A program made the translations under genes and the position numbers. The notes beneath the pieces were generated by a model. It saw only the letters and a program-made list of their open reading frames with translations. It did not search any database and had not been told where the DNA came from. A stretch of DNA of 64,000 nucleotides, taken from Entomortierella parvispora E1425. Its lineage: Eukaryota; Fungi; Mortierellomycota. Position 1 is the first letter of the stretch, and each line of letters starts with the position of its first letter. The stretch lies in NCBI GenBank assembly GCA_020891255.1, contig BQFW01000009.1:1302001-1366000 (forward strand), written 5' to 3'. Positions 7,713 to 53,263 of the stretch are shown one piece after another.

Positions 7713-8966
7713 CAAACAAAAAAAAATATAAGGCGGCACTTTTGAGCCTCAGGGTGTCCTTCGATCCATCAAGACTGCACCTCTCCGTTCTGGTGCAATG
7801 GACGATTGCAAGTCGTTTTCTGGGTTGATTTTTTTCATGGCGGATGAGGGAAGAGATTGAGCGTGGAAAGCAGAGGGTTGCTCTACGAGGGGTTACAGAA
7901 GCAGAATGTTATATACCGATCGAAGGGGGAAAAGCGCGGTCTCTTTCATCGGAGAAAAATTGAGTTTGGATTTGGTGGCGCACCGCAGTTTGAGCGACTG
8001 GACATACATGCTGCTCAAGGATGGAGACGTTCTTTGTGCGGCCCGCTTGCGCCTCTCGTCTGCTCCAACGTCGGTGCTGCCAGACATAGGGTGTCGTTTG
8101 TGTCTATTAAGTGAGTACGCGCGTACCTCAAGTGGATGTAATTGATTCCTTTAGTGCTCCTACTTAAAGATTGTCATTGCCATCAAATTGGACTCTTCCC
8201 CCTGCTCAGTCCTGCTGATCGCCCGTTTCCCACGGCCATAAAGAAGACAACAAAGGGTTGAGGTTGACGACAGTTTGGGCATCACGAGAATGATCGACTT
8301 CACCACAACCAAAACTGCGTCTTGCTGCCATCATCCGTCTGCGTGCAGCAAATATGAGGGGAACTAATCCCTGACCAGCTGTTTTTGCCAGGTCCCAGCT
8401 TGCGTAAGATTGAGGTCCCGGAACCCACATGTCAGCGACCTCCGTCCACCACAGCAGTGAATGTACCTCTGGTAGACTACAGAGCACACACGACTCCGAC
8501 AGCGTGCAGCAGCTGAAGGGTGCTGTAGCTGGCCGTCTCCCGTCTCTCCACGTTTGTTCCCACCACGACGATTCAAATTTGGCTCCGATCGGGAAAGGCA
8601 AAAAAAAAAAGTAAAAAAAGTAAAAAAAGAGTGACTGCTTCGCCCTCTGACCGGTTTGTGGGTGCACAAAACGAGTGGGGGAGAGCAAGAAGGTCTTCGA
8701 AGGAAAGGGCCCCGATGCCGTGTTCTTCATCTTCCTCATCCTTCATCTCCCTTCATCTGCATCTGCATTGGCATCCATTTCATCCCTTCATCCCTTCACT
8801 TCATCATCACTGAACTAGCTCCAATCACCGTTGAATGTACGTGGCACAGGATGCACCCGATCAGAATTTCAATTGAATGTGAAACTTACCTCGAACCATG
8901 CAACTTTTTTTTCTTGTCTTCTTTAGCGAGTCAAGACAGCACCCTCCCCATCCCCCATTTCAAATC

Positions 8967-11648: not shown

Positions 11649-14071
11649 ATGTCCTTCAAAACAGAGCATCCAAACCTAACAGCCATCGGCGACTATGTCT
11701 CGCATCTCGGACACAGGCTCACTCACCTCTTGGGTCGAGAGACGTGTGAAAGCGAACAAGAGGTTGTCCAGGTCGTCGACCGCGAAATCATTGATCCCCT
11801 TCTCGATGGTGAGGACTTGCTCGAGGACGCAGCGATCGAGGCTGCTCGACAGGAATACGAATTCATTCAGCCTTCCACCCTCTTCAAATGTGGACCCATC
11901 CTCCGTTTCCAAGATATCAATGTCAAACACCGCCGCTGGATTGGTTCGGCCCTTATCGTCACGGATAAGGAAGAGAAGCCCCCAAGACTCTGCCTTCGCG
12001 ACCCTGTCAAGGGTCGAATTGGCTACTCTGTCCCTCGCCTGTTGGACACCTGGGAGGGCAACCACTTTTACAGATACGAGATTCAATTGGCGATGATGAG
12101 CCACCGTATGAAGAAGATTGAGTATTGGTTTGAGGAATCAGTCATCGGCGAGTCTGGTCAAAGACCTGAGGGATACCATCGCCAAAAGTGGAACTTTCAT
12201 GTGCCGGCATTGGAGGAAGGCCACAATTGGGCATTTTACTCTTGTAACGGTTTTACGTCCGATGTAGAGGATCCCGAGACCAACTTTCATGGCGCGAACC
12301 CATTGTGGGATGACTTGATGATGGTGCACGATCATCGCCCCTTCCATACCATGGTGGGAGGAGGTGATCAGATCTACAACGACGATGTCTTGGCCACTCC
12401 CGAGATGGCCGAGTGGCTGGCAATGAAAAGCGATGCCAGAGTTGCGACAGAATTCAACAACGAGAAGAAGTACGCAGTCGAAAAGTACTACTTTGAGCAC
12501 TATGTCCAACACTTCACCACCGGCACTTATTCCAAAGCCCTTTCGCTGATTCCTTCTGTCAACACTTGGGATGATCACGATATCTTGGACGGATATGGAT
12601 CATACCCACCACACTACCAATTGTGCCCGGTCATGCAAGGTAAGCACAAAATACAACCCCCTCCTATTTTCAGCCAAATCGAAAACTGAATGGCGCGTGG
12701 GTCTCTCCATCGTTACTGTCTCCCCCAGAGAGCCCATCCAGCAACAATCTCCCTGTTTGATCTCGCTTGGTTACTTTGCCCATTTTCTTTTTTTGACAGG
12801 ATCAAAAAAAAAAAGTCGCGTAGTTTCAATTATTTTCCCATGGTGGGTCTCACATCAATTGCTCACGCTGCCTCTTTTTTTCTTTCTTCTTTGTACCTTT
12901 CTCATTACCGCGGAACTCAAAGGCATCGGCGCGGCGGCTGCTCGCTTCTACCTCCTGTTCCAACAACATGCCAATGCCTACACAGCCCCACAGGCTGGAC
13001 TCTTGACCTCAGCCTCTGGCAAGGGCTGGAACTGCATCACCCATCTCGGCCCCCGTACCTTGGTGGTCTTGCCTGATACCCGATCGGAGCGTTCCAAGGA
13101 GACCATTCTCTCGAACGAGACGTTTGCCTTGTTGGAAGAAGAGATCAACCGCCGTCTTTTGCCCACCACAGACCATTTGGTCATTGTCCTCGGAACTCCT
13201 CTTGTCTACCCAGCATTGACCCTGTTCGAGAACACATTGGAAAAGATGGGCGATAAACTTTCTCGAGGCAGTGTCATTGGCAAGATCTTTGGCAAGTGCA
13301 AAGCATTTGAGAACGTCTTGGGCCAATTCGGACCCGAACTGTTGGATGATCTGGTCGATTCTTGGGCGTGCACAGTTCACACGGAAGAGAAAAGACGCTT
13401 GGTGGAGATGTTGCAGTCGATCGCTATCCAGCGTAAGGTGCGCGTTACTTTTGTTGGTGGAGATGTAAGTAGTGAAATTGTCCCTGTTTTTTTTTTTTTT
13501 TTTTTTTTTTTTTGCTAATGATGATGATAACGAGAGATGACATCGAACTAATTCAATGACAACCTTTTTCTTAGGTGCATGTTGGAGGAGCCGGTCGTCT
13601 TTTCGGAACTGAGAGTAAAGACAGACGGACGGATCCCTATGATATGGTTCAAGTCGTTTCTTCGGCCATTGTCAAGTAAGCCCATGCCCTTTCAGTCCCT
13701 GTCCGCTCGTGTTATTGCTGATTTTTTTTTAGTCCTTTATTTTTCTCACCTTCCATGTTTTGCTTTATCTTTCTAATATCAGTGGGCCACCCCCTGGAGC
13801 TGTTATCTCTATGCTCCACACTGCCGCCAAGACCTACCCCTTGAACGAACACACTTCGGAGCAAATGATCGATATCTTCCACCAGGATGTAGATGGCACC
13901 AAGCTCGAGTACAAGAAATTGTTGAACCGTCGTAACTGGTGCGCGGTGCGCGAGCAGTTGCAGGACCAACAGATCAAGTTCACGCTCAGAGTCGAGAACT
14001 TGAACCATGTGGGTGTCCAGAAATACCCCATCCTCGTCGACAAGCTCCACACCACTCCCATTGAAGAATAA
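11649..14071 (+). CDS. Fungal PhoD-related metallophosphatase-fold protein, multi-exon
   Basis: FYSCNGF, MVGGGDQIYND, WDDHDILDGYGSYP, GGDVHVGG and QVVSSAIV motifs of the PhoD-like family; GT-AG introns near 12640, 13466 and 13676. Confidence 0.85.
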
Positions 14072-14699: not shown

Positions 14700-14878
14700 G
14701 TGAGAGCGGTCATTGATGTCTCCTGTCCAGTGGATTGGTGATGAACGATGAAGAAAGAAGAAGGAAGACAACGCGCTGCGGAAGTACTGCAGCGTTTAAA
14801 AAAGAGAGCGAGCAACACAGCCGCATGGTGCACGGTGCACTCCTTTGACACGGTGCTGTGCGCCACCAAAACGAGAGG

Positions 14879-14887
14879 ACAGAACTT
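14879..14887. repeat. Target-site duplication ACAGAACTT (left; right copy 22487-22495)
   Basis: Perfect 9-bp direct repeat bracketing the TIRs. It can also be read as TG..CA termini with a 7-bp TSD (CAGAACT). Confidence 0.9.
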
Positions 14888-15909
14888 GAAGCTCTGAACC
14901 CAGCCCCTCTTTGCTCACTCCTTCACTTCAGAGGGGCTGGGCGCAAATCTCACCCTTTCCTATGGATGACCCAAAATAATTTTTTCGTCCAAAAAAGGAA
15001 AAAAAATTCTCTGATAAATAGTGTAATTTAAAAACTTTAAATAAATTCACTCTAATAATAATAAAATAGTGAGAGTAATGCCAGCCATGCAGCCATGCCA
15101 TCGCTCGTCGCCCGGCTTGAATGGGGTTAATTTCTTCCATTTTTTCATTTTCAATGCCACCACTTTCTTTCATAAACCCCGCGTTCCGATCTTGCATTCA
15201 GCTCCTGCCACCTCTTCTTTATACCCTTCATCTGATTAAATGACAAAGATGGCAAGCAAAAAGACCAATCGAGCAGAGGTGAGGAGACGCGTCTCGGGTG
15301 TCCATGATGCTCAGAGTCGCCCACGCGTCCATCTGCTCTATTTTTCTTCATCTCTTCATATTTTCTGTTGTAGTCATGATGCTCTTAGCAAATCTGATCA
15401 AGATATCCCGGGAACGCCGAGAAGATCGCGTAGCACCAAGGTGAGTAGCTTGATGTGGTGCCTGGTGGCCTCTTCCTGGTGTGGCCTCTTCTAACTCTGT
15501 GATTTACAATAGGGTGAGGGACGATTTCGTCTTGATTCCCCAGGTGCTCCTCCGCGAACCCCGCAAACAACACAAACCCCACGAGCACCACGAGCACCAC
15601 GAACTCCACGAACCCCGCGCACCTCACAAACCTTACAAACGCCAAGATTCATACAGTCACCAATTGTGGCCAACCAAGTATGAAAAAAATCGTTAAAAAA
15701 TATGTGCTGCTCGCGTTTTCTTTTCTAACAGATGTATCCACCTCCTCCCATTCATATCGATTAGGGAACTACCAATGGTTCTGGTGCTACCGATATGGCC
15801 CAACCTTTACCCTTTGTCATGGAGGCACAGGCTCTTTCTCCGACTTCTCAGGCTGCGTACATTGGAGGATCAACGCAATTCAACATTGGAAAAAATTCGA
15901 CGCCACCCA
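14888..15909. repeat. Left terminal inverted repeat
   Basis: Reverse complement of 21466-22486. The ORF track gives mirror-image ORFs (14928-15197/22177-22446, 15481-15696/21679-21894). The only difference I found is A5 versus A4 at ~15258. Confidence 0.95.
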
Positions 15910-18157
15910 TCACTGGAGAAGAACCGCCACGACTCAATGTTGGAGAGAATTTGACGCGATCCAATGTTGGAGAAGAATCGCCGCGACCCAGCAATGCGTC
16001 GGAGGAGTTGACGTTCGATCCTTTCTGTGATAACACTGATGGAGAACCAATCATGACGTGGGGTTCTGATAACTATTATGTAAGAACCCCTTTGAGGAAA
16101 AAGTGGTCATCGATGCAGCCATCGTCATCAGCTCCTTCTTCACCCGCCAATTCTGTCGGCTCTCCGTTGCAGTCATTCTCGTCACCATCAAATGCGGTTC
16201 TTAGCCAACCTTTACCGTTTATACAAAAAAGCGATGAACGCGAAGACGAGAGTGATGTCCAGGTAAGTCGAGTTTAATTATGAAATGGCGATGTTCTGGA
16301 CTTGCATTAACTCTCACATTAAAATGCATATATGTCTGTAATCTTCATACTGCAGGATCCATTATGTAAAGAGGCTATTCAAGCTTGCCGAAAGCGTTTT
16401 CATCACTCACCAAAGGAGGAGCAGCTTCGTGTTGTCAAACATATATACAACAAGCAGGATTGCTTACTGCTTGCGCCCTGCGGGTGGGGAAAAACACTTG
16501 TATTTTCTCTGCCAATGGTGATGTGGAAGGACAAGATTACGGTCGTCATTTCGCCGTTGATTGCCCTGATGCAGGATCAGATAAAGGTATGCCAGCATAC
16601 AATATACCAGTCTAACAGGTATACTTTTTTCTAACATATCGCGCAATGCGACCCTGTGTTAATACTCTAGAAACTCAAAGAAAAGGATGTCACTTGTTTG
16701 CTACTCTCGACCTACAACGGCAATCGAGTTAACGACAGTGACATTAAATTAGTTAAGGAGGGACATTACAGAGCTGTGTTCATGTCGCCAGAAGTCATTT
16801 TCGGGAAAGGATCTACTGCATGCAAGGTTCAGGACCTTTGGAACAATAAGTATTGGAAAAGTCAACTATGCTCCATCGTCGTAGATGAAGTCCACTGTGT
16901 AGATAAATGGAAAGATTTTCGGCCGTATTATTCGCAAATTGGATCATTGCGTGGTAAGGTACCTGGGGTGCCGATCGTAGGCCTGACTGCAACCCTCCCA
17001 CCCGATTCGCTCCAGGAAATCAAGAATAGCGTCTTTCTCGCCTCGTCCACCGTTCATGTCATTCGTGTGGATGACATTCGTGATAACATCCAGCTCGAAG
17101 TTCATACCTTTTCACTAAGGAATCGAGTCAGACAACTGGCGAAGTTGCTGGACAATACAAAGACGATTGTCTATTTTGACAGCATCGCACTTCTCAGAGA
17201 TGTACAGGACAAGTTAAGGCCATTGAGGCCTGATCTGCGAATGGACGCATTTTTCTCAACCCGCCTTAGTTCTTCCAAGGATAAAGTCCTGCTCAAGTTC
17301 ATTAATAGCGAGATTGATGTCCTGTTGGCTACTGATGCCTGCGGCATGGGATGCGATATCTCAGATGTTATCACTGTGTTCCAATATGAGTAAGTTGAAA
17401 CGTAACTAAGGTTGGACAATGCGGATGAAATGAGAGACGATCTTACTTACTTCAAGATATTTTCAATGATATGAAGTCTGCCTCACGATTTGACGAGTCT
17501 TGTGCAGAGGTTCGGTCGAGCAGCGAGGGGTCCTGGAACTAAAGGCTTTGGGATCCTCTTGGCGCCTCCAACTACCAGCAGGAAATACAACAAGAGACCT
17601 GACATCTTAAATTTCGTTGCCCCCCAATTGACAAGGACAAGGACAAGGAAAAGGACAAGGAAAAGGACAAGGACAACAGTCGGAGGAAATGTCGGTGGCA
17701 TGTGGTGGATGAATATCTAGGGAACAAAATATCCTCTCGTACCAAATGTTGTGATGTATGTCTCGGTGAGTCTTGTCGCCGCAAGACGACCGAACTTACT
17801 GGTCAAATTGGGCCCGAACTGACTATACCAAAGGGGAAGAGCGCGGACAAAGATCAGGATGTAGGGAGGAACAGGTTATTGGAGTGGAGGAAGAACGAGT
17901 GCAAAAAATGGACAGGAGAAGAAGTGTCCTTCGTGGACTTCGAGCTTTGCGTTTTGCCCGATAAAGTACTCGCAAGGTTGTGCTACAAGCTCTTTGCGGC
18001 CACCACTACTGAAATGGTGAGGTTGATAGCTGACAGCTGTGATTTTGTGCCAGTGGATTGCGATCATTTTGAAATGATCGCTGAGGTTGTGGCGAAAGCC
18101 CTGGGCGAGATAGAAAGTACGAAAAATGATCAAAATTCCTTGGTAGTCGAAGAATAG
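15240..18157 (+). CDS. Transposon RecQ-like SF2 helicase (frameshifted); leader exons lie inside the left TIR
   Basis: Motif I APCGWGKT, Ia VISPLIALMQDQ, II DEVH, III LTAT, V ATDACGMGCD, VI QRFGRAAR and Zn-binding CRWH...CCDVC. Exons 15765-16262, 16356-16586, 16671-17389 and 17477 onward join in phase. Frameshift at the C6 run ~17620. Confidence 0.88.
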
Positions 18158-18323
18158 CCCATCAATTGACCGAGCCAAGATGACAAGGAGATGGAGTCAC
18201 TGCTTGCATCTGATGACCCTGCACAACCAAACATTTACAGCCGGCCGGGCCATTTAACATCGCACGAGCCCAGGTCCCATTCATTCATTCTTCTTTAGTT
18301 AGTATTATTATTGTCATAAAATA

Positions 18324-21300
18324 TCATTCAGCTACAACATGGTCGTTGGCCTCGACTTCCTCCATATCCACAGTATCGTAGCTATCGCTTTTTCTGAGAA
18401 AACATGCTATAGCACTCTCTGCCATTTTGTGCGCGCCAACAGTTTGAAGGTCAACTACCACGGATGGAGAAGGCCGAGTGTCTTGCTTGGATGCCCAAAG
18501 GATTCCACAGAACTGGAGATTGTCTCTGACAAGCTCAACATCCTCTTTCGTGGATGGTTTTTTGTGAGCAGTGCTGTTGTACTTGGTTTCTATCTCCCGT
18601 TCGAAATTACGTGCAATGGTTTGAAATATCTCGACGTTTGTTGAGATTTGTTCGCGAAGATAGTCCCAGCTTGCGTTTGGCCCTTTCGCTGCATGAGTGG
18701 CTTTGAGGAGGAAGTTGATGATTTCTTGGTACATGTCCGTTGGCATCCATGCTTGAGGAATGCCTTTAGGGTTCACCAGCATGCTTGAAAGGACCCTGTG
18801 TTCCCATTCACGCGTCCACAGGTGGCGCATGCCGTGGAGAAAATCGTAGTAGCTCAAGGGCATATTTGGAATTGCCTCCGCCGTGCATCATCAATGCCAC
18901 GGTTGGTAGCACACATCTTATCCGCCCAAGATCGCCAGCCTTAATAGCAGCAGAGAGTTCGATGAAAACGATCATGTCTCGGAGGAAGAGAAGAGCATTG
19001 ATATCTGCTGGAGTGCAGGGCCGGCCATTGAGCAAGGGATTGGCATGCTGCAGACTAGCTATGGCGTAAATGACAAGATCAACGAATCTTGTCATGTCAG
19101 ACTCCACTGAGGTATGAAGATCTTCCCAGAGTACCATTGACATTGCGTCGAAAACAATCTTCAGCAGTTCACTGGTTGGCTTGTACTCCGGTTTATCCGT
19201 GTTAAAGCCTTTACTGGCCAATAGGGAAATGAATGATGCAAGTGAGCCTGGGGTATTGGCATCGGCGCCAAGATGTGTCTTGTAGATCGTGGAGCAAAGT
19301 GTCATTTGGAGATGGAAGAGCTGAAACGTAGGATGTACCCAACCAAGACTGCCGAATGGATCCGACTCAACCATGCGGTGTACCTTGAGAGATAAAAGTC
19401 TAGAGACAGTCATCTGATCACCGGCCACTATGATGTCCCTGGTGGTCTTGCTGAACCATTCATCGCTTAAGCCGAGATCTATCTTTGTTATGTTTTCCAG
19501 CACTGCGAGATTTCCGGCAATAGTCGACTCATCGATCTTCATGGTTGGCAATGGAAAAGTTTTCGTCTTAACAACCTTCAGTACGTCAATGGCCGGCATG
19601 GGAATCACGCAAACACTGGGTGATCGAGGCAAAAACTGCGAAATGGCAGTCGACAGATGTGTGCGGCAGGCAGCCCTAGTCATGGTGCGGTCGGTGCTTG
19701 TGGGGAAAAAAATGCTGGCGCTTGGCTCTGGCCTGTCCACTCTGAAGCAAACCATTGGGGATGATCGAGGTATTTCAGCACTCCTGGAGCTCCCGAGATT
19801 TGAGCTGTCGGGAATCAGAATCACGGTAGCAGCTGTGCCGTTGTCGAACGTGTCTCTTTTTCCTACTCTCTGGTGATGGTGCCTTGTGGCAATGTTGATG
19901 TTGTCGTATACAATGTAAAAGTCGTTGTTGAGGACTGCCACCTTCACCCTCTCCTGTGCGTCTTTGGTCAAGGCCTTCAATGCCCTGTGAATCTGATCAT
20001 ATGACACGCAAAGTCCAAGAGCCGACAAAGTCTCTAAAACTCGTCTGGGAGCTCCCAGGCAGTGAAGATAGATGCCCATTACCATCTGAAAAGCATTGCA
20101 TTGCTGGGATCTCAAGAACATGAGCATAGCAGAGATGCAGCCACGAACAGAGCTGGGTTTTCGACCGCGCCTGCGAGCAGGTGTAGCGCTTCCCACAGTT
20201 TCTTCATCATTGTTGCCGATGTTGTCACTGCCGTTGTTGACGGTGTTATCGCCGTTGCTGTCGATGTCGTTGTCGCCGCTATTGTCGCTGTTGTCGCTGT
20301 TGCTCTCGGTGTCGTTCTCACTGTCGTTGCCGTTGTTGTTGCCTTCGTTTACTCTGGTGCTACCATCGCCACTGTTCGTACCATTTCCCTTGCTAAGCAT
20401 GCCGTCCAAAAGTCGTGTCAAAAAAGAAGCTTCGCCGGCGTAAGAGTCGAGAAACCCGTTCCTGAGGATCTTATCGATATTTTCCTCCGACATTCTATTG
20501 TGCGGGAATCGGTAGGCTGGGTGTGGGCCATCGTCACCTACGACGCCGTTCTTGAGGCGATCAAGCTCCCGTTTAGTCCTTGAGACAACGACGTCTACAG
20601 CGCTGTTCACAAATGGGGCATCCCATTCTTTGATCTTGCGTAACTTTTGGCTCCAAATTTTGATAACGCGACGAGGACCGTCTTTGTGATAGAATTGATG
20701 AGTCCAGCGCTTGATGTTTTCATCTTGAGAGTTAAACAGCTTCTCGAAGAAGGCGGGAAGTGAAAGCTGTTGTTCCCTGATGTAGTTAAGAATCATTGCA
20801 ACTTTGTGGGTAGAGGAATGCTAAAAAGAAAAATAATTGTTAGACGCCTGTGGGAGTGACATATTGCTGGTTTCTTTGGACAACCGGTCTTCACATACAT
20901 GCGGCTTCCTTGTTGATCCGGGCATTCGATCCTCTCCATTGGTCGCTCTGAGTGTGGGGGGAATCGGGCATGCACATCTATACGTAATTCGTAATTCACT
21001 TGAGAGGTAATTCATAAATTACGATAAGGATGTTTTCGAAACCATGTGCTGAATTTACCTGCAGTGTCGATGAGTTGAACTGCTCCTCCATGTCGGCCGT
21101 TAAAGTCCTAATCCTATCACTGAATTTCACTGCATGTTAGAAATTTGCGTAAACCTGGGGGCAACTAAAGTTGCGACAGGGTAGGCAGGTTGGGGTATCT
21201 CATGCTTACGCGAACTGAGGGGTGCTCAGATTCCTAGATCGTCGCGAGTTTTTTCTTGTGGGGGTCCTCATGTAATCGTTCCCAGAAACCCATATCATCG

Positions 21301-22134
21301 GCGTCTCTGTTCGATTACTTCCTAATCTCCGAAGCCAGAATGGGCTATCGAATGGCTCTCCATCAGTGTTGTCACAGAAAGGATCGAGCAGAGACTCCTC
21401 TGACGCATGCTTGGGTCGCGGTGATTCATCTCCAATGCTGGGTCGCGGCGACTCTTTTCCAATGTTGGGTGGCGTCGAATTTTTTCCAATGTTGAATTGC
21501 GTTGATCCTCCAATGTACGCAGCCTGAGAAGTCGGAGAAAGAGCCTGTGCCTCCATGACAAAGGGTAAAGGTTGGGCCATATCGGTAGCACCAGAACCAT
21601 TGGTAGTTCCCTAATCGATATGAATGGGAGGAGGTGGATACATCTGTTAGAAAAGAAAACGCGAGCAGCACATATTTTTTAACGATTTTTTTCATACTTG
21701 GTTGGCCACAATTGGTGACTGTATGAATCTTGGCGTTTGTAAGGTTTGTGAGGTGCGCGGGGTTCGTGGAGTTCGTGGTGCTCGTGGTGCTCGTGGGGTT
21801 TGTGTTGTTTGCGGGGTTCGCGGAGGAGCACCTGGGGAATCAAGACGAAATCGTCCCTCACCCTATTGTAAATCACAGAGTTAGAAGAGGCCACACCAGG
21901 AAGAGGCCACCAGGCACCACATCAAGCTACTCACCTTGGTGCTACGCGATCTTCTCGGCGTTCCCGGGATATCTTGATCAGATTTGCTAAGAGCATCATG
22001 ACTACAACAGAAAATATGAAGAGATGAAGAAAAATAGAGCAGATGGACGCGTGGGCGACTCTGAGCATCATGGACACCCGAGACGCGTCTCCTCACCTCT
22101 GCTCGATTGGTCTTTTGCTTGCCATCTTTGTCAT
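18324..22134 (-). CDS. DUF6589/Academ-type DDE transposase (frameshifted); leader exons lie inside the right TIR
   Basis: FLRSQQCNAFQMVMGIYL, VYDNINI, AGDQMT, FHLQM, KAGDLGR, YALELL, LVNPKG and DMYQEIIN motifs. +1 frameshift at the A4 run 18840-18843. Upstream exons 22097-22134, 21935-22001, 21698-21862, 21210-21610 and 21059-21119 splice in phase to 20820. Confidence 0.85.
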
Positions 22135-22486
22135 TTAATCAGATGAAGGGTATAAAGAAGAGGTGGCAGGAGCTGAATGCAAGATCGGAACGCGGGGTTT
22201 ATGAAAGAAAGTGGTGGCATTGAAAATGAAAAAATGGAAGAAATTAACCCCATTCAAGCCGGGCGACGAGCGATGGCATGGCTGCATGGCTGGCATTACT
22301 CTCACTATTTTATTATTATTAGAGTGAATTTATTTAAAGTTTTTAAATTACACTATTTATCAGAGAATTTTTTTTCCTTTTTTGGACGAAAAAATTATTT
22401 TGGGTCATCCATAGGAAAGGGTGAGATTTGCGCCCAGCCCCTCTGAAGTGAAGGAGTGAGCAAAGAGGGGCTGGGTTCAGAGCTTC
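21466..22486. repeat. Right terminal inverted repeat
   Basis: Reverse complement of 14888-15909. Confidence 0.95.
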
Positions 22487-24136
22487 ACAGAACTTTAAAG
22501 TGTTTCCCTTTGCATGCTCATGTTCGACGACCCTCATGCATGCCTCCATTCCTTGACCATTCTTCTCCTTCTCGTTTGCATCCATTCATTCATCCAGCAC
22601 AATGTCGACTGTCCAGTAAAGCACGCATGCCGTCCTGCTCCTCACCATCGACACCACCTAGAATGAACGCGAGGCAATTCCACAATAATTCCCTTCCTCA
22701 TACTCATAACACAAAGTTCAAAAGGCGGATCTTATTATTGTTGAAATTGATGGCTACTTCTACAAGCTGATAATAAAAAGACAGAAAAAGAAGGCGCTGC
22801 GAAAAAGCAATGAAGGTCCCAAAGGTCTTCAAAAGTCCTTTTCTGCAACCATGTTCGAAAATGAGAAAAGAGAAAGAGAAAGGTTTTTTTTTGGTGTTTA
22901 CAAGCTGCTACCCGCAGGCGTGCGCAACTTTAAAGTTCCCTAGGAGCTCATGAGCACTCCTCGCAGGGTAATGGATGCGCCTTTCGGCTACTCACATCCA
23001 CCCGCCGACATGTCTTTTTCCTTTATTCCCCAGCATGCCCAGCACACACTACCCGCCGCTCAATGCGACTGATAAGCAAAATCCATGATAAGTCAAGGGT
23101 GCGACCTACAAGGGCTAATGACGTTTTCCAAGATACCCAACTTCATGAAGATCGAGTACCGCAGACAGAGTGACAAGAGTAGAAGCCCCCGCGTCACGAA
23201 AATTGCGAGTAATGGTGAAGGACCCACTGAGGCGGTAAAAAGATTGCATCCTTTCCATCCTCGGGAGCGTCGGCGACTGAGGAGAAAAAGAAAGAGGGGG
23301 AAAGGTCTGGTATTTATACCTGACCTCCCACTAAGTGACTGGTCTGGCCGAGGTGGACGGGGGGTTGTGCAAACGATGCCTTTTTCGTTGCTGCTGACAT
23401 GGTTGCACAAAATGTTCTCGTCACGAAGCGTTTTTAAGAGACGAGCCATTTCATTTTGAAAAAAGTCCAGGCAGACTGCCGTTGGTCACGGGGTCGACGT
23501 CGACGATGAGATGAACATAGGAGTGACCACGATGAAATGTCATTGCCTCTTGACCATGAAGGAGAAAAGTGGAGATCACCATGTATCTCGTTGAATTTTG
23601 ATCTTTTTTTTTTTTTTTTTTGAATGTAATATTTCGCGTCAATTGCCTGTTCAAGTCGGCTTTCTGCACACTTCCAGTCGTTCAATCACAGTGTATTAGC
23701 CCTGCCTCTTCTCAGAGAGCAAGAGATGCTGGCCTCCTGCTCCACTCGATAACTGAGACTGGTCAGGTAGGCCCATTTCTCCATGGCCATGGCTGCTTGT
23801 CAATTGGCCTTCAATTCCACCATCATATCGTCTTCATCCGAGCCATGCCTCTTTCCAGTGCCTCAGTGCTAGTCGTGCGTCCCCTACACGACTCGTCATG
23901 AGAATCCTCTATCTAACCTCGAGATCAATTGCACTTTCTCTCGGAGAGAGGCGTCCTATGTACGTCTTTCGTCTTTTCCGCTCGTGTTCAGTTCGCATTC
24001 ATGTAGCCAGCACCATCTACGAGCTCTACTAAGTACTAATCAGATCAATATGTTGCATGTGGGCGATTCGATTGGACTGTAACTCTTCTACCTCCTAGTG
24101 CATGGTGTTTGGAAAGCTCCCTTTTTATTATTATTA

Positions 24137-33126: not shown

Positions 33127-34453
33127 CTTCGCCCACCGACCCTCTTGTCCGTTGCAGCCTATTCTTGTCTACGAGCGCGTTTCTTGCCTTCCTCTCCGAA
33201 TGCTGCGTGGCAGTGATGTTTCAGTCAAACCACACGACTGTCTGGGACGCGCCTCTCTCTCCAGCTGTGAGCAGACTCGTTCTGCGAAATGACGCTGTAA
33301 AGTATCCACCCTTGAACTGGCGCCATTTTATGACAATCCTTGCCGCCTTTCTGCCCCCTTCTTCAATGGATGACAAACAACTGCCCACCCCACCTTCCTC
33401 CCCCTTTTTCATGTGTTTTGACTTCATATTTTTTTGCAGTCCGAGAAACGATTTTGAAGTTTCCCTCGGTTCAATTGCTTCCTTCTTACTGGACAAAAGA
33501 ACCACAACCACAACAGGTTCGCCCTCTGAACCCCGTCCGTTCTAGGGGGAGGGGACCTTGACCTTAATCCGACGAAGGATAAAACCATTGGCCAAGTGAG
33601 CCCGAATCGTTCCTGACCCGGACATATGCTTTGATCGATTCGATGGAGTAAATCTCAAAGGGAGGGAGCAACGAAAGCAACACTCTGCATTCATGAAACG
33701 CGTCCCTCTGTTTCTCATCGCCACCAACGACAGACAATCACCTTGGCAGTGCATGAGCTAGCTGGGAGTTTGTTCGACTTTCGACAAAGGTCCCTGGTTT
33801 CATCTGGACTAGCGTCCTCTGGCTTCCCATGGCGTATGGTCGCTCACCATTTTCTTGCCGTTGTTTTTCATAAGAGCAAACAGTAGGACTCTTTGTGTCT
33901 TTATCAAACTGATCAATGTTAGCTCATTAGGGTGCTTCTCCGTTTCTCCATGTTGCCCTGGCCCCTCCCCGCCCCGCTCACAGATTTTTTTCAGGAGCAA
34001 AAAATAAAGTATCAACCTATCGATTTGAACTTTCACCAGAAAAGGTGGTCGTCTCCTTGGTTCTCAAAGAAGGAAAACGACCAGATCTTTGAGGTTTGAT
34101 GGCTCCTGAGTGCTGTCTCCGGGTTCCCCTTCGGCCAGCTCCATTGATTTTGCTTCCCACCGACGACCCCATCTGGACCTTGACGTGCAAATCAACCTCC
34201 GGATATCGGCAAGGGCCATGCTTATAATCCTTTAAGGACTTGACTCTTCTTCCCGTTTTGTGTTCTCTCTTTTTTTTTAACTGTTCTCTTTCGTGACCTC
34301 ACTAACACCACAATAATCGCTCCCAATTCATTTCCTCCTTCTGCGTCTTCAACGGTCGACTCTCTGAGAACGGAAAGGCAAGAAATCGAAAGAACCACAG
34401 GAAAATTCTCCTCTCAAGCAAAGAATAACAACAAGGAAACAATCACAACGACA

Positions 34454-50650: not shown

Positions 50651-53263
50651 TTATTGTTCCTTGATGTCGGTGATCGAGTACGGAAAGACTCTGAAATCAT
50701 CGTACAACAGATTTCCTTCCTCATCGTAATGGAAATCGTAGTAGCACTGCTCGCAAAAGTAACAAGGGGTCTCTCCAGCCAGACGATCGTCCACTGTGAT
50801 GAAGTGCGCAGGGTTGAAACGACACATTTTGCACTTGTGCTTGATCGCTTTTCGTCGAAAGATAGTCTTTGGGTAGCAGAGTCGATTGAGTTCGTCATGT
50901 TGGTGACTGAAAAGTCTGCAAAAAGAAAAAGGACAAAAAAAAATGTAAATAGCTGAAAGTCTAGGACACAACCTCCTCCAGCCTCCTGGACTTCATACCT
51001 CAGATCTTTAAACTTGATGATATGTTCACAGTTCCCTTGATGAACGAGTAGGTAAGGATGGTTCAGTCGGATCGACAAATCTCGGATCAGAGTTAGGGCC
51101 ATCAGTTTCTTTTGCAGATTTTGAAACTCTGGCGACTCTCTCCTCACAGGTGATTCCTGCACCCAATTCAAAATAGTTCTAGTCGAAGAAAAAAAAAAAG
51201 ACAGAAGAGAGTGGAAAACACAAGGGATTGTTAGGGCTCATTCCATCGTGGTCATTTGTCGATACAACGTCGCTCGACACTTACTGGCTATAGTCAAACG
51301 AAACCGCGGCATAGGCAGCCTCATCCTCAAGTGCAAACTGATCCAAAGGTATATTTTCTGAAGTGGGTTTCGCCATCTCTGCCCTCAAATCCGAATCATC
51401 ATAGTTCAAGTCGTAATCTTGTTCCATTGGTTCCTGACCCTCCCGCTCCAATTGTTGCAACCACGCCTGCTGAATCGCTATGGCGTCCTCTCGTCGTGTC
51501 TTACATTGCTCTAGCAACTCGTCTTTCCGCGCTTTCTCTTTGGCCACTATTCGAGCCTTTTCGTCCACCCGCGCTCGGATCAACGGTGAATCGGTATAGA
51601 AGGTGCCTTCGATAAACATAAAAGAGTTGCTGGCCTTTCTCTTTGCCGTGTTTCGGATCTTTGAGTTTTCATTCCCCCGTTCGTCAAACTCGCTCTTGGA
51701 GGTGAAATCTGTCAGACAGTAGAAGGTATCACGCATGTCTGAGAGAGGTTGACTTCCCAAGAACATCGTCTCCTGCACTTTGATCGTGGGCTTTAACGAA
51801 CTGTAAAACTCCACCACGACCACGACTTCGCCCGGATCGACGATGGGGACATAGGGTCGAGAAAACGGAGATCCCTCGGACTGGATGTAATTGAGTGGTT
51901 CGCGCTGATGAGGTGGCAACACAAAGTGCGAGTCGACCTGGAGGGACCGGAGAGGCGAATCCTCAATCTTCAGAGATATATCCTGGAATTTGAGTTCAAC
52001 GTTTGTTGGACGGATCAACTCGATTTCCTTTTCGGTTTGCGAGGTCTGTTGGGCTCGTTGAGTTTCCATTTCAGCTACAAATATGGCCAAACTCTGTAGA
52101 CCTTCATCTGTTGCGCCATTCGTCTTGACCACCTCCGAGCTATTTCGTCCCTTCTGATTTTGATCAACGCCCGCAGGGATGTCGACGGAAACAGCCCCTG
52201 GCAATGGCGCAGTGCTCTCTCCTGATGGCGCTTCTGTGTCTATTGTGGTTCCTGACGAAGAGCCTGCCTGAACCTGCGATCGCTCTGGACCAGACCCAGA
52301 ACTTGATGAGCTGATCCCTGCCGCAGATATCTGGACGCTCTGTGAATGCTGTTTTGAGGCTGAGGCCGGCTCTTCCATCTCCACATCTGGTTCGCCTTCT
52401 GTTTCCAGTGCTCTCTGCTTTCCCTTCTTTATCGGGGGCTCTATGGCGGCATTCTTTCTGGCCCAGCGCTGCTTTCTTTCTTTTTCTTGTCTAAGCCTCA
52501 TTGCTGTTCGATTGGTCTCGTACGGTACTCTTCGATGACCTCTCATCGGGGCACTCAAAAGCCTCCGCACCTTATTGTCGGCCGAGCTTGTGACATTCAT
52601 CTGATTGTCCCGCATATGGATGTCCGCAGTGTCTCCAGCCTCGTTGATTTCCTCCGCCAATCCATAGACTGAGGCCCAAGTCGGCCGAAGAGGCCTATCC
52701 TTGGCGGCTGAGAGGATCTCTTCTTGTCGATCCTCTATCCTGTCCGTGAACCATTCCTGGAGGAGACCCAGGACTGTTGGATCCTCAAAAGGCTGATTGG
52801 CTTCCTGGAGATCATCAAAGATATCACACCGGGATACAAGATCTTGTGCGGCGAGATTTTTGGAGGTCAGATAGGCCTTGAAGGGGTCGTTTTGCTCTTG
52901 CTGTTGGAGGAGGCGGACGAAATTGGAGCTGAAGGTCGATATAGAGATGAGTTCACTCTGTGGATCGGTGGCCAAGATTGATACTTTCTCAGGAATCCGT
53001 TTTGGGGACTGTGGTGGTGGTTGCTGCAGCTCCTGTTGGCCCTGTTGCTGTTCTGGTTGCTGTGATTGCTGCTGCTGCTGGCCTTGCTGCTCGTGTGGGT
53101 TGGCTGTGGCTATGGTCCTGGAGAAACTTGGTGGCGACGTCCGTTGTGGCCCAGAGGACGAGGAATGTGAATGGCCTGGCTCTGGTTGTGGGGATGGGGA
53201 TGGGGAAGACAAGTAGGCGTAATCCGATGCAGGAGACAGGGACGGGAAGAATGATTCGCTCAT
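50651..53263 (-). CDS. SNAPC3: snRNA-activating protein complex subunit 3 (SNAP50)
   Basis: FLGSQPLSDMRDTFYC, FMFIEGTFYTD, LSIRLNHPYLLVHQGNCEH and zinc finger CKMC...DDRLAGETPCYFCEQCYYDFHY; two introns. Confidence 0.88.

Follow-up and report, generated by a model that had tools for sequence, protein, structure and literature searches.

Academ is, to our knowledge, among the least studied superfamilies of DNA transposons, and we know of no member that has been shown to move and of no job assigned to the helicase of its AcademH lineage. AcademH, the helicase-encoding lineage of Academ (Kojima 2020, Mob DNA 11:15, as cited in PMC10045372, PMC10799480), combines a transposase with a helicase and makes target-site duplications of 9-10 bp, whereas the duplications of the nuclease-carrying AcademX are 3-4 bp long (PMC10045372). 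It has been reported from Basidiomycota, Ascomycota and Mucoromycota (PMC10799480); Academ elements have also been reported in Mortierella and are most abundant in Pucciniomycotina (PMC5751038). A second superfamily that has to be considered here, Kolobok, makes TTAA duplications of 4 bp and carries a C/DxxH motif (PMC9587614). In this study, we describe an element of 7,599 bp in a stretch of 64,000 nucleotides from contig 9 (positions 1302001-1366000, hereafter the window) of the soil fungus Entomortierella parvispora, whose genome of 38.9 Mb in 20 contigs was searched for further copies. Very probably, this element belongs to the AcademH kind of autonomous-type, cut-and-paste DNA transposons and arose, like eight further copies, in a very recent burst. 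The family is new, but the kind of element is known.

Nine near-identical copies with long inverted ends

The element starts with the letters GAAGCTCTGAACC at position 14888, ends with GGTTCAGAGCTTC at position 22486 and is flanked on both sides by ACAGAACTT, a perfect duplication of 9 bp (Table 1). Its ends are inverted repeats of about 1.02 kb. The preliminary description of the window, which had been made from its letters only, gave a single base as the difference between them, and direct alignment of 14888-15909 with the reverse complement of 21465-22486 showed that this is exact, the sole difference being an extra A in the run at 15258-15262. A repeat finder placed the inverted arms, taken together, at 14887-15964 and 21411-22487. 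Inward of the perfect repeat lies an indel of 27 nt, followed by a region of about 75% identity, which fades by approximately position 16050. The point at which the perfect identity of both ends breaks off lies within a tandem array of 27-nt units.

A DNA search of the genome returned nine full-length copies, and a search with the terminal 30-mer found exactly 18 perfect ends and one diverged lone end on contig 11, but no shortened or deletion derivatives anywhere in the genome. When all copies were oriented, perfect 9-bp duplications were seen in eight of the nine, every one different, while that of copy L008 has 7 bp, or 8 depending on how one G is counted. The flanks of different copies show no similarity to each other. 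The preliminary description had left it open whether the flanking 9-mer belongs to the element; as it differs in every copy, it is a duplication and not element sequence. It had also allowed for two sets of termini, of which G..C with a 9-bp duplication stands, because the bases adjoining the element vary among copies; for the same reason, TG..CA ends with a 7-bp duplication are ruled out.

Seven of the copies have no substitutions among them, and L008 and L009 have two apparent substitutions each, which are adjacent to indels. All remaining differences between copies, in 17 columns, are single-base changes in homopolymer length. The burst is extremely recent. The youth that had been proposed for the element is thereby upheld, although it follows from the identity of the copies to each other and not, as had been argued, from the match between the two ends of one copy.

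The lone end-like 30-mer on contig 11 (G000:C11:1353704-1353733) has three mismatches to the terminus of this family and could be an old relic or else mark one end of a related family. The nine copies are confined to five mid-sized contigs (C5-C9), three of them lying within 0.9 Mb on contig 9, and the largest contigs have none. This clustering may reflect local hopping, but is not statistically firm. At copy L005, the insertion site is bracketed at some distance by an inverted repeat of 150 nt with 74% identity, which is unrelated to the element.

Convergent genes and a common N-terminus

The two genes of the element are convergent, with stop codons at 18155-18157 on the plus strand and 18326-18324 on the minus strand, and the 166 nt that the preliminary description had counted between them agree with these positions. 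A Pfam scan assigned DEAD and Helicase_C to open reading frames (ORFs) of the plus strand and DUF6589 to two ORFs of the minus strand (E 9e-59 and 9e-26). DUF6589 is the only Pfam assignment of the transposase, and no other transposase family matched. The main DUF6589 ORF is 100% identical to the NCBI protein EMPS_07069 of E. parvispora, and by mapping this protein to the window the transposase exons could be placed, with the ATG at position 22134 inside the right end. All 12 introns of both genes, six of them in the transposase gene, follow the GT-AG rule. Read from the genome sequence, the full transposase frame would span approximately 1,095 codons. Relatives with 37-69% identity are found across the Mortierellaceae (Podila, Mortierella, Linnemannia, Actinomortierella, Dissophora, Gamsiella and Haplosporangium), and others with 25-28% identity in Agaricomycetes. 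A profile search of 1.84 billion representatives found 6,940 relatives at E <= 0.001, of which the best 150 were listed, all of them close. One relative, P0092 (KAF9969049.1) from Actinomortierella ambigua, contains DUF6589 followed by DEAD and Helicase_C in one predicted protein; unless two gene models were merged here, a related element has both parts on the same strand.

An alignment of 27 homologues revealed a near-invariant D (VYDNINI), a second D (GDQMTV) and an E..N...K pattern (DMYQE), from which the catalytic residues were predicted. The AlphaFold model that we used is that of a full-length homologue with 61% identity (P0003; pLDDT, the model's local confidence score, 75.6, with the core mostly above 85) and not of the element's own protein. 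It has the strand-strand-strand-helix-strand-helix-strand order of RNase H, with the first D on strand 1, the second after strand 4 and the E on the helix that follows a helical insertion of about 170 residues. A second-look structural aligner (VIA) gave Z-scores of 11.3 for Hermes, 9.2 for Tn5, 8.8 for RAG1, 8.2 for the P element and 7.8 for ISCth4. Judged from this model, the DUF6589 core is a DDE transposase fold.

The helicase gene likewise has seven exons, and its introns after exon 4 (16263-16355, 16587-16670 and 17390-17476) are all of the GT-AG type. In copy L002, splicing gives an open frame of 799 codons; homology searches were run exon by exon, and the joined spliced models were checked for open frames only. 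The best PDB sequence matches of the helicase core are WRN, RecQ, BLM, RECQ5 and RECQ1 (E 1e-15 to 1e-10), and the region around motif II reads VVDEVHCVDKW-KDFRPYY, as is typical of the RecQ type. Towards the C-terminus, the protein has a CRW..Y.G....CCDVC pattern, which is reminiscent of the RecQ zinc-binding module. The C-terminal 184 residues have no detectable PDB or Pfam match, and an HRDC domain was not found in the helicase.

A protein search of the genome uncovered two further groups of related loci, with 38% and 36% identity, and one locus at 41%. At least six copies belong to one group and three to the other, and within a group they are nearly identical; for each locus examined, one 10-kb half was read. 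These groups, here families 2 and 3, have the same layout as the element (family 1), with a helicase gene on the plus strand followed tail to tail by a DUF6589 gene on the minus strand. Family 2 has inverted ends of 553 bp that begin with TAGTCTCG, and the ends of family 3 begin with TAGGCTCGACCCAGCCC. The exact 11-mer AGAGGGGCTGG is present in all three families, 43-92 nt inside the end and directed inward, and is followed by a ..GCAA[AG]T-like stretch; the termini are also similar. In family 1, two inverted copies of the 11-mer form a subterminal palindrome (stem z -3.06). As far as sequence comparison can tell, this block is the best candidate for a transposase-binding site.

In family 1, helicase and transposase start at the same ATG within the inverted ends and have exons 1-3 and part of exon 4 in common. 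Because the left end repeats the same exons on the plus strand from position 15240, the first 138 residues of both proteins are common to them, and all 138 N-terminal codons are identical. The fourth exon of either gene remains open beyond the perfect repeat, where both retain the motif ASEE..DPF..W.S.N..TP.RK; as this motif occurs also in Podila transposases, the region is taken to be coding. A shared N-terminus encoded in the ends of family 2 was ruled out, as the ORF inside the end has no similarity and is of low complexity, and the helicase ATG does not come until the inner edge of the end. Since this ORF looks non-coding, the coding ends are particular to family 1, whereas long ends that serve as promoter and 5' region seem to be general across the families. 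We propose that each inverted end would act as the promoter and 5' part of the adjoining gene and that the common N-terminus might give both proteins the same localisation or the same partner.

A host word at a fixed distance from seven of nine insertion sites

In seven of the nine copies, TTGGTGGCG (with at most one mismatch) is located at a distance of exactly 18 nt from the end of the element and thus 9 nt past the duplication. The target word can be written as GCCACCAA and is mostly present as CGCCACCAA, with GCCAC[C/T]AA as its invariant core. Four of these copies have it on their helicase side and three on their transposase side, with a constant orientation to the insertion point. Given the frequency of the word in the window, the chance of seven in nine at a fixed offset is approximately 1e-22. 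The exact 9-mer TTGGTGGCG occurs 1,863 times in the genome, compared with 313 times for a reversed control, an approximately 6-fold excess, and the 8-mer was observed 22 times in 141 kb of host DNA, where 4.3 were expected. Long open frames make up 62% of the bases, and 16 of these 22 sites are outside them. That the word is part of a tRNA, a small RNA gene or a host repeat was rejected, as the window contains no tRNA, Rfam gave no match and the flanks of the copies are not similar to each other. Due to its over-representation, its location mostly outside long open frames and the lack of tRNA and Rfam matches, the word looks like a host regulatory motif. Its resemblance to TGGGCGCA, a site in the element ends of which it might be a copy, is weak. 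The word often occurs in close pairs. None of the ten ends read in families 2 and 3 has the word, so that the specificity, if the element does choose its targets by it, would be encoded by the element and have evolved recently.

We give about even chances to the proposal that the element is a site-directed DDE transposon, whose transpososome reads the intact host cis-element GCCACCAA and integrates one helical turn away in either orientation, and whose two proteins are linked through an N-terminal module that the ends encode. By this module, both might be taken into the nucleus, assemble with each other or be bound by a host factor that reads the word. Neither fixed-offset targeting with a 9-nt spacing nor an end-encoded shared module, and likewise neither coding ends of 1.02 kb nor an 11-mer common to several families, is mentioned in the literature reached, to which the original description of AcademH does not belong.

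In the mechanism that we propose, the transposase would bind the conserved subterminal block AGAGGGGCTGG..GCAAAT, pair both ends and excise the element. The word GCCACCAA would be read by the transposase or by a bound host protein, which would set the active sites one helical turn away, and on insertion the target would be cut with a stagger of 9 nt. The helicase might open or remodel the DNA at the ends or at the target, or channel the repair of the donor gap. Opening of ends or target by the helicase would fit the longer duplications of AcademH (9-10 bp) compared with those of AcademX (3-4 bp). With this family, the role of the helicase and the targeting rule are directly testable: its ends are exact and its nine copies identical, the stagger of 9 bp is defined, the gene models are clear, the host is culturable, and there are candidate catalytic residues (D, D and E, and the Walker A lysine in GWGKT) and a candidate binding site common to three families.

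The positions of all features are collected in Table 1. In the vicinity of the element, the nearest recognisable host gene upstream codes for a PhoD-like phosphatase and ends about 1.4 kb before the element. At 11649-13518 on the plus strand, there are two overlapping ORFs, both matching the PhoD-related phosphatase family PF19050, which are probably one gene divided by an intron or a frameshift. An unassigned ORF of 537 codons is located 1.6 kb downstream of the element on the opposite strand.

Table 1. Positions of the element, its genes and related sites (numbering of the window unless a locus is named)
Feature	Position	Strand	Remarks
Whole transposon, 7,599 bp	14888-22486	+	One of nine near-identical full-length copies
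Left target-site duplication ACAGAACTT, 9 bp	14879-14887	.	Perfect match to right copy
Right target-site duplication ACAGAACTT, 9 bp	22487-22495	.	Perfect match to left copy
Left terminal inverted repeat, 1,022 nt	14888-15909	+	Helicase exons 1-3, start of exon 4, presumed promoter
Right terminal inverted repeat, 1,021 nt	21465-22486	-	Transposase exons 1-3, start of exon 4
Four 27-nt tandem units, left end	~15883-15990		Counterpart of right-end array
Three 27-nt (9-codon) tandem units, inner edge of right end	21412-21492	-	
Subterminal palindrome, two inverted AGAGGGGCTGG copies	14899-14941	+	12-bp perfect stems 14899-14910/14930-14941; mirrored at 22433-22475
AGAGGGGCTGG sites, window	14900-14910, 14930-14940, 22434-22444, 22464-22474		
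AGAGGGGCTGG sites, sister families	L022:5583-5593; L027:6415-6425; L028:6797-6807		
RecQ-family helicase gene, 7 exons	15240-18157	+	Pfam DEAD, Helicase_C; spliced frame
Helicase exons	15240-15278, 15374-15440, 15513-15677, 15765-16262, 16356-16586, 16671-17389, 17477-18157	+	
Helicase Walker A (GWGKT)	16482-16496	+	
Helicase DEVHC	16884-16898	+	
Helicase motif VI (QRFGRAARG)	17505-17531	+	
Helicase Zn-finger-like CRW..CCDVC	17690-17761	+	Out of frame in window copy owing to C6 run
DUF6589 (putative DDE transposase) gene, 7 exons	18324-22134	-	Pfam; EMPS_07069 mapping
Transposase exons	22134-22097, 22001-21935, 21862-21698, 21610-21210, 21119-21059, 20977-20899, 20801-18324	-	
Predicted catalytic D (VYDNINI)	19905-19903	-	
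Predicted catalytic D (AGDQMTV)	19419-19417	-	
Predicted catalytic E (DMYQEIINFLLK)	18725-18723	-	
A5 run	15258-15262	+	A4 in other eight copies and right end; shifts helicase exon 1
C6 run	17620-17625	+	C7 only in copy L002; shift between motif VI and Zn-finger-like part
A4 run	18840-18843	-	A3 in five copies; puts last 175 transposase codons, including catalytic E (predicted), out of frame
Host word CGCCACCAA (TTGGTGGCG on other strand)	14861-14869	+	9 nt from duplication, 18 nt from element end
TTGGTGGCG word sites, window	7972-7980, 14861-14869, 33719-33727, 53128-53136		
Sister-family loci	Family 2: L021-L026, L030; family 3: L027-L029		
L005 inverted-repeat arms	Left 169-316, right 588-732 of oriented flanks		

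Reading frames, classification and comparison with known systems

As assembled, the window copy has three single-base homopolymer frameshifts, which affect both genes, and the element that had been called complete is therefore complete in its structure but not in its reading frames. Introns do not account for the shifts. No GT..AG solution links the main DUF6589 ORF to the C-terminal ORF, and the two frames fuse with a one-base-shorter A run; an intron from helicase motif VI to the C-terminal ORF could use none but poor donors and would remove conserved sequence, and in L002 a C7 run joins the frames. The public model EMPS_07069 ends at position 18811, where there is no intron, and is truncated because of a single-base difference in run length, so that 175 codons are missing at its end, among them the one for the predicted catalytic glutamate. 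Since all frameshifts are in homopolymers, substitutions are nearly absent and the downstream frames are open and conserved, it is in our view highly likely that they are errors of the long-read assembly.

The alternative is that the family is real but that its copies, including the one in the window, are dead, with genuine frameshifts and a burst driven by a lost master copy or by the enzymes of another family. Every assembled copy has one or more frameshifts in the transposase gene and eight of nine have one in the helicase gene, with the C6 run at 17620-17625 common to eight copies, as would be expected for dead elements. We nevertheless regard this as unlikely: all 17 of the 17 length differences are in homopolymers, against practically no substitutions in 68 kb, which is the signature of long-read consensus errors, and at every variable run the frame-preserving state is found in at least one copy. 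In addition, the frames past each shift are open for 175-184 codons and conserved in other species, and the ends of the other families differ outside the shared block. The differences between copies are a direct read-out of homopolymer errors in the assembly; they suggest that residual consensus errors are present in its repeats, and other gene models may be broken too. That the element is not mobile at all and instead goes back to an assembly artefact or to the duplication of a pair of host genes has next to no probability; both genes have domains of a cellular type, but there are nine copies with sharp common inverted ends, unrelated flanks and a duplication of their own at each locus.

The AcademH-like identity put forward in the preliminary description, for which an Academ or DUF6589 homology of the minus-strand ORF was decisive, is supported by the features of the element: the ORF is DUF6589 according to Pfam, its DDE core is predicted to have an RNase-H-like fold, an SF2 (superfamily 2)/RecQ-like helicase is encoded within the element, and inverted ends and 9-bp duplications are present in copies at unrelated loci. 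DUF6589 entered Pfam after 2017. In 2017, Academ and Kolobok were the only DDE superfamilies reported in Mortierella without a Pfam model (PMC5751038), and we file the element under AcademH because of this elimination together with its features, the comparison with Academ being one with its published description and not with named Academ sequences. Indirect support comes from the parallel abundance of DUF6589 and Academ in rusts, as DUF6589 has been reported to be enriched in the rust Puccinia striiformis. Several points weigh against our assignment and against an active element. As assembled, the transposase frame is not fully open in any of the nine copies, and an open helicase frame is seen in L002 only. 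The gene models and the mobility are read from the genome sequence of one assembly, and the roles of the helicase and of the common N-terminus are inferred only. The top Foldseek matches, Hermes, P element, ISCth4 and RAG1, have weak E-values (0.008); clear scores came from VIA only. The literature reached does not state that DUF6589 is the Academ transposase, and the link would rest on elimination and common features instead of a comparison with Academ sequences; AcademX-like relatives with an XPG nuclease were not seen among the matches listed in protein, profile, hidden Markov model and Atlas searches, which were fungal DUF6589 proteins only.

These last points would also fit an unnamed DUF6589 superfamily that resembles AcademH in layout and duplication length only. 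We consider this quite improbable in view of the elimination among the Mortierella superfamilies, the enrichment of DUF6589 in P. striiformis next to the abundance of Academ in Pucciniomycotina, and the combination of a helicase with 9-bp duplications, which is the published signature of AcademH. An assignment to KolobokH, the other fungal lineage of DNA transposons with a RecQ helicase, is very improbable. KolobokH is known from fungi only and encodes a RecQ helicase, and one red-algal Kolobok has its helicase on the opposite strand (PMC9587614); the element also has RR..YY ends (GA..TC), and the relative P0092 is predicted as a single DUF6589 and helicase protein. On the other hand, the duplications of the element have 9 bp and a varied sequence and none is TTAA, and a conserved C/D-x-x-H is missing from the tested interval of both alignments, in which the nearest conserved His is that of QLFH. 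Helitrons were ruled out on account of the RecQ-like instead of Pif1-like helicase, the absence of a Rep domain, the long inverted ends and the 9-bp duplications.

Compared with known systems, the helicase of the element resembles cellular RecQ helicases such as WRN, BLM and E. coli RecQ in its Walker A motif, its DEVHC..W.DFRPYY region and its motif VI, but differs from them by a transposon-encoded N-terminus that it has in common with the transposase. In structure, the predicted DUF6589 core comes closest to the hAT transposase Hermes (PDB 6dwz/4d1q; Z 11.3 over 300 residues), and both have an RNase H fold with a large helical insertion ahead of the catalytic E. The sequence identity is only about 10%, however, and the protein of the element has neither a match to the hAT dimerisation domain nor the CxxH motif. 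Duplications of hAT elements have 8 bp. As those found here have 9 bp and Pfam detects only DUF6589, membership in hAT was ruled out, and the likeness is limited to the fold. With regard to target choice, Dada, said to have been described by Kojima and Jurka in 2013, is reportedly a target-specific eukaryotic DNA transposon that inserts inside small-RNA genes. Both Dada and the element belong to the DDE type and have a strong sequence-directed choice of target, but the word next to our element is a host motif of 8-9 nt that is left intact, 9 nt outside the duplication and on either side. KolobokH elements are likewise fungal DDE transposons with a RecQ-type helicase, but their helicase follows the transposase and is read in the same direction (PMC9587614), whereas the genes of the element are convergent. 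AcademH agrees most closely: its elements, too, occur in fungi at a low copy number, have inverted ends and 9-bp duplications, and encode a helicase of the SF2/RecQ-like type alongside a DDE-type transposase.

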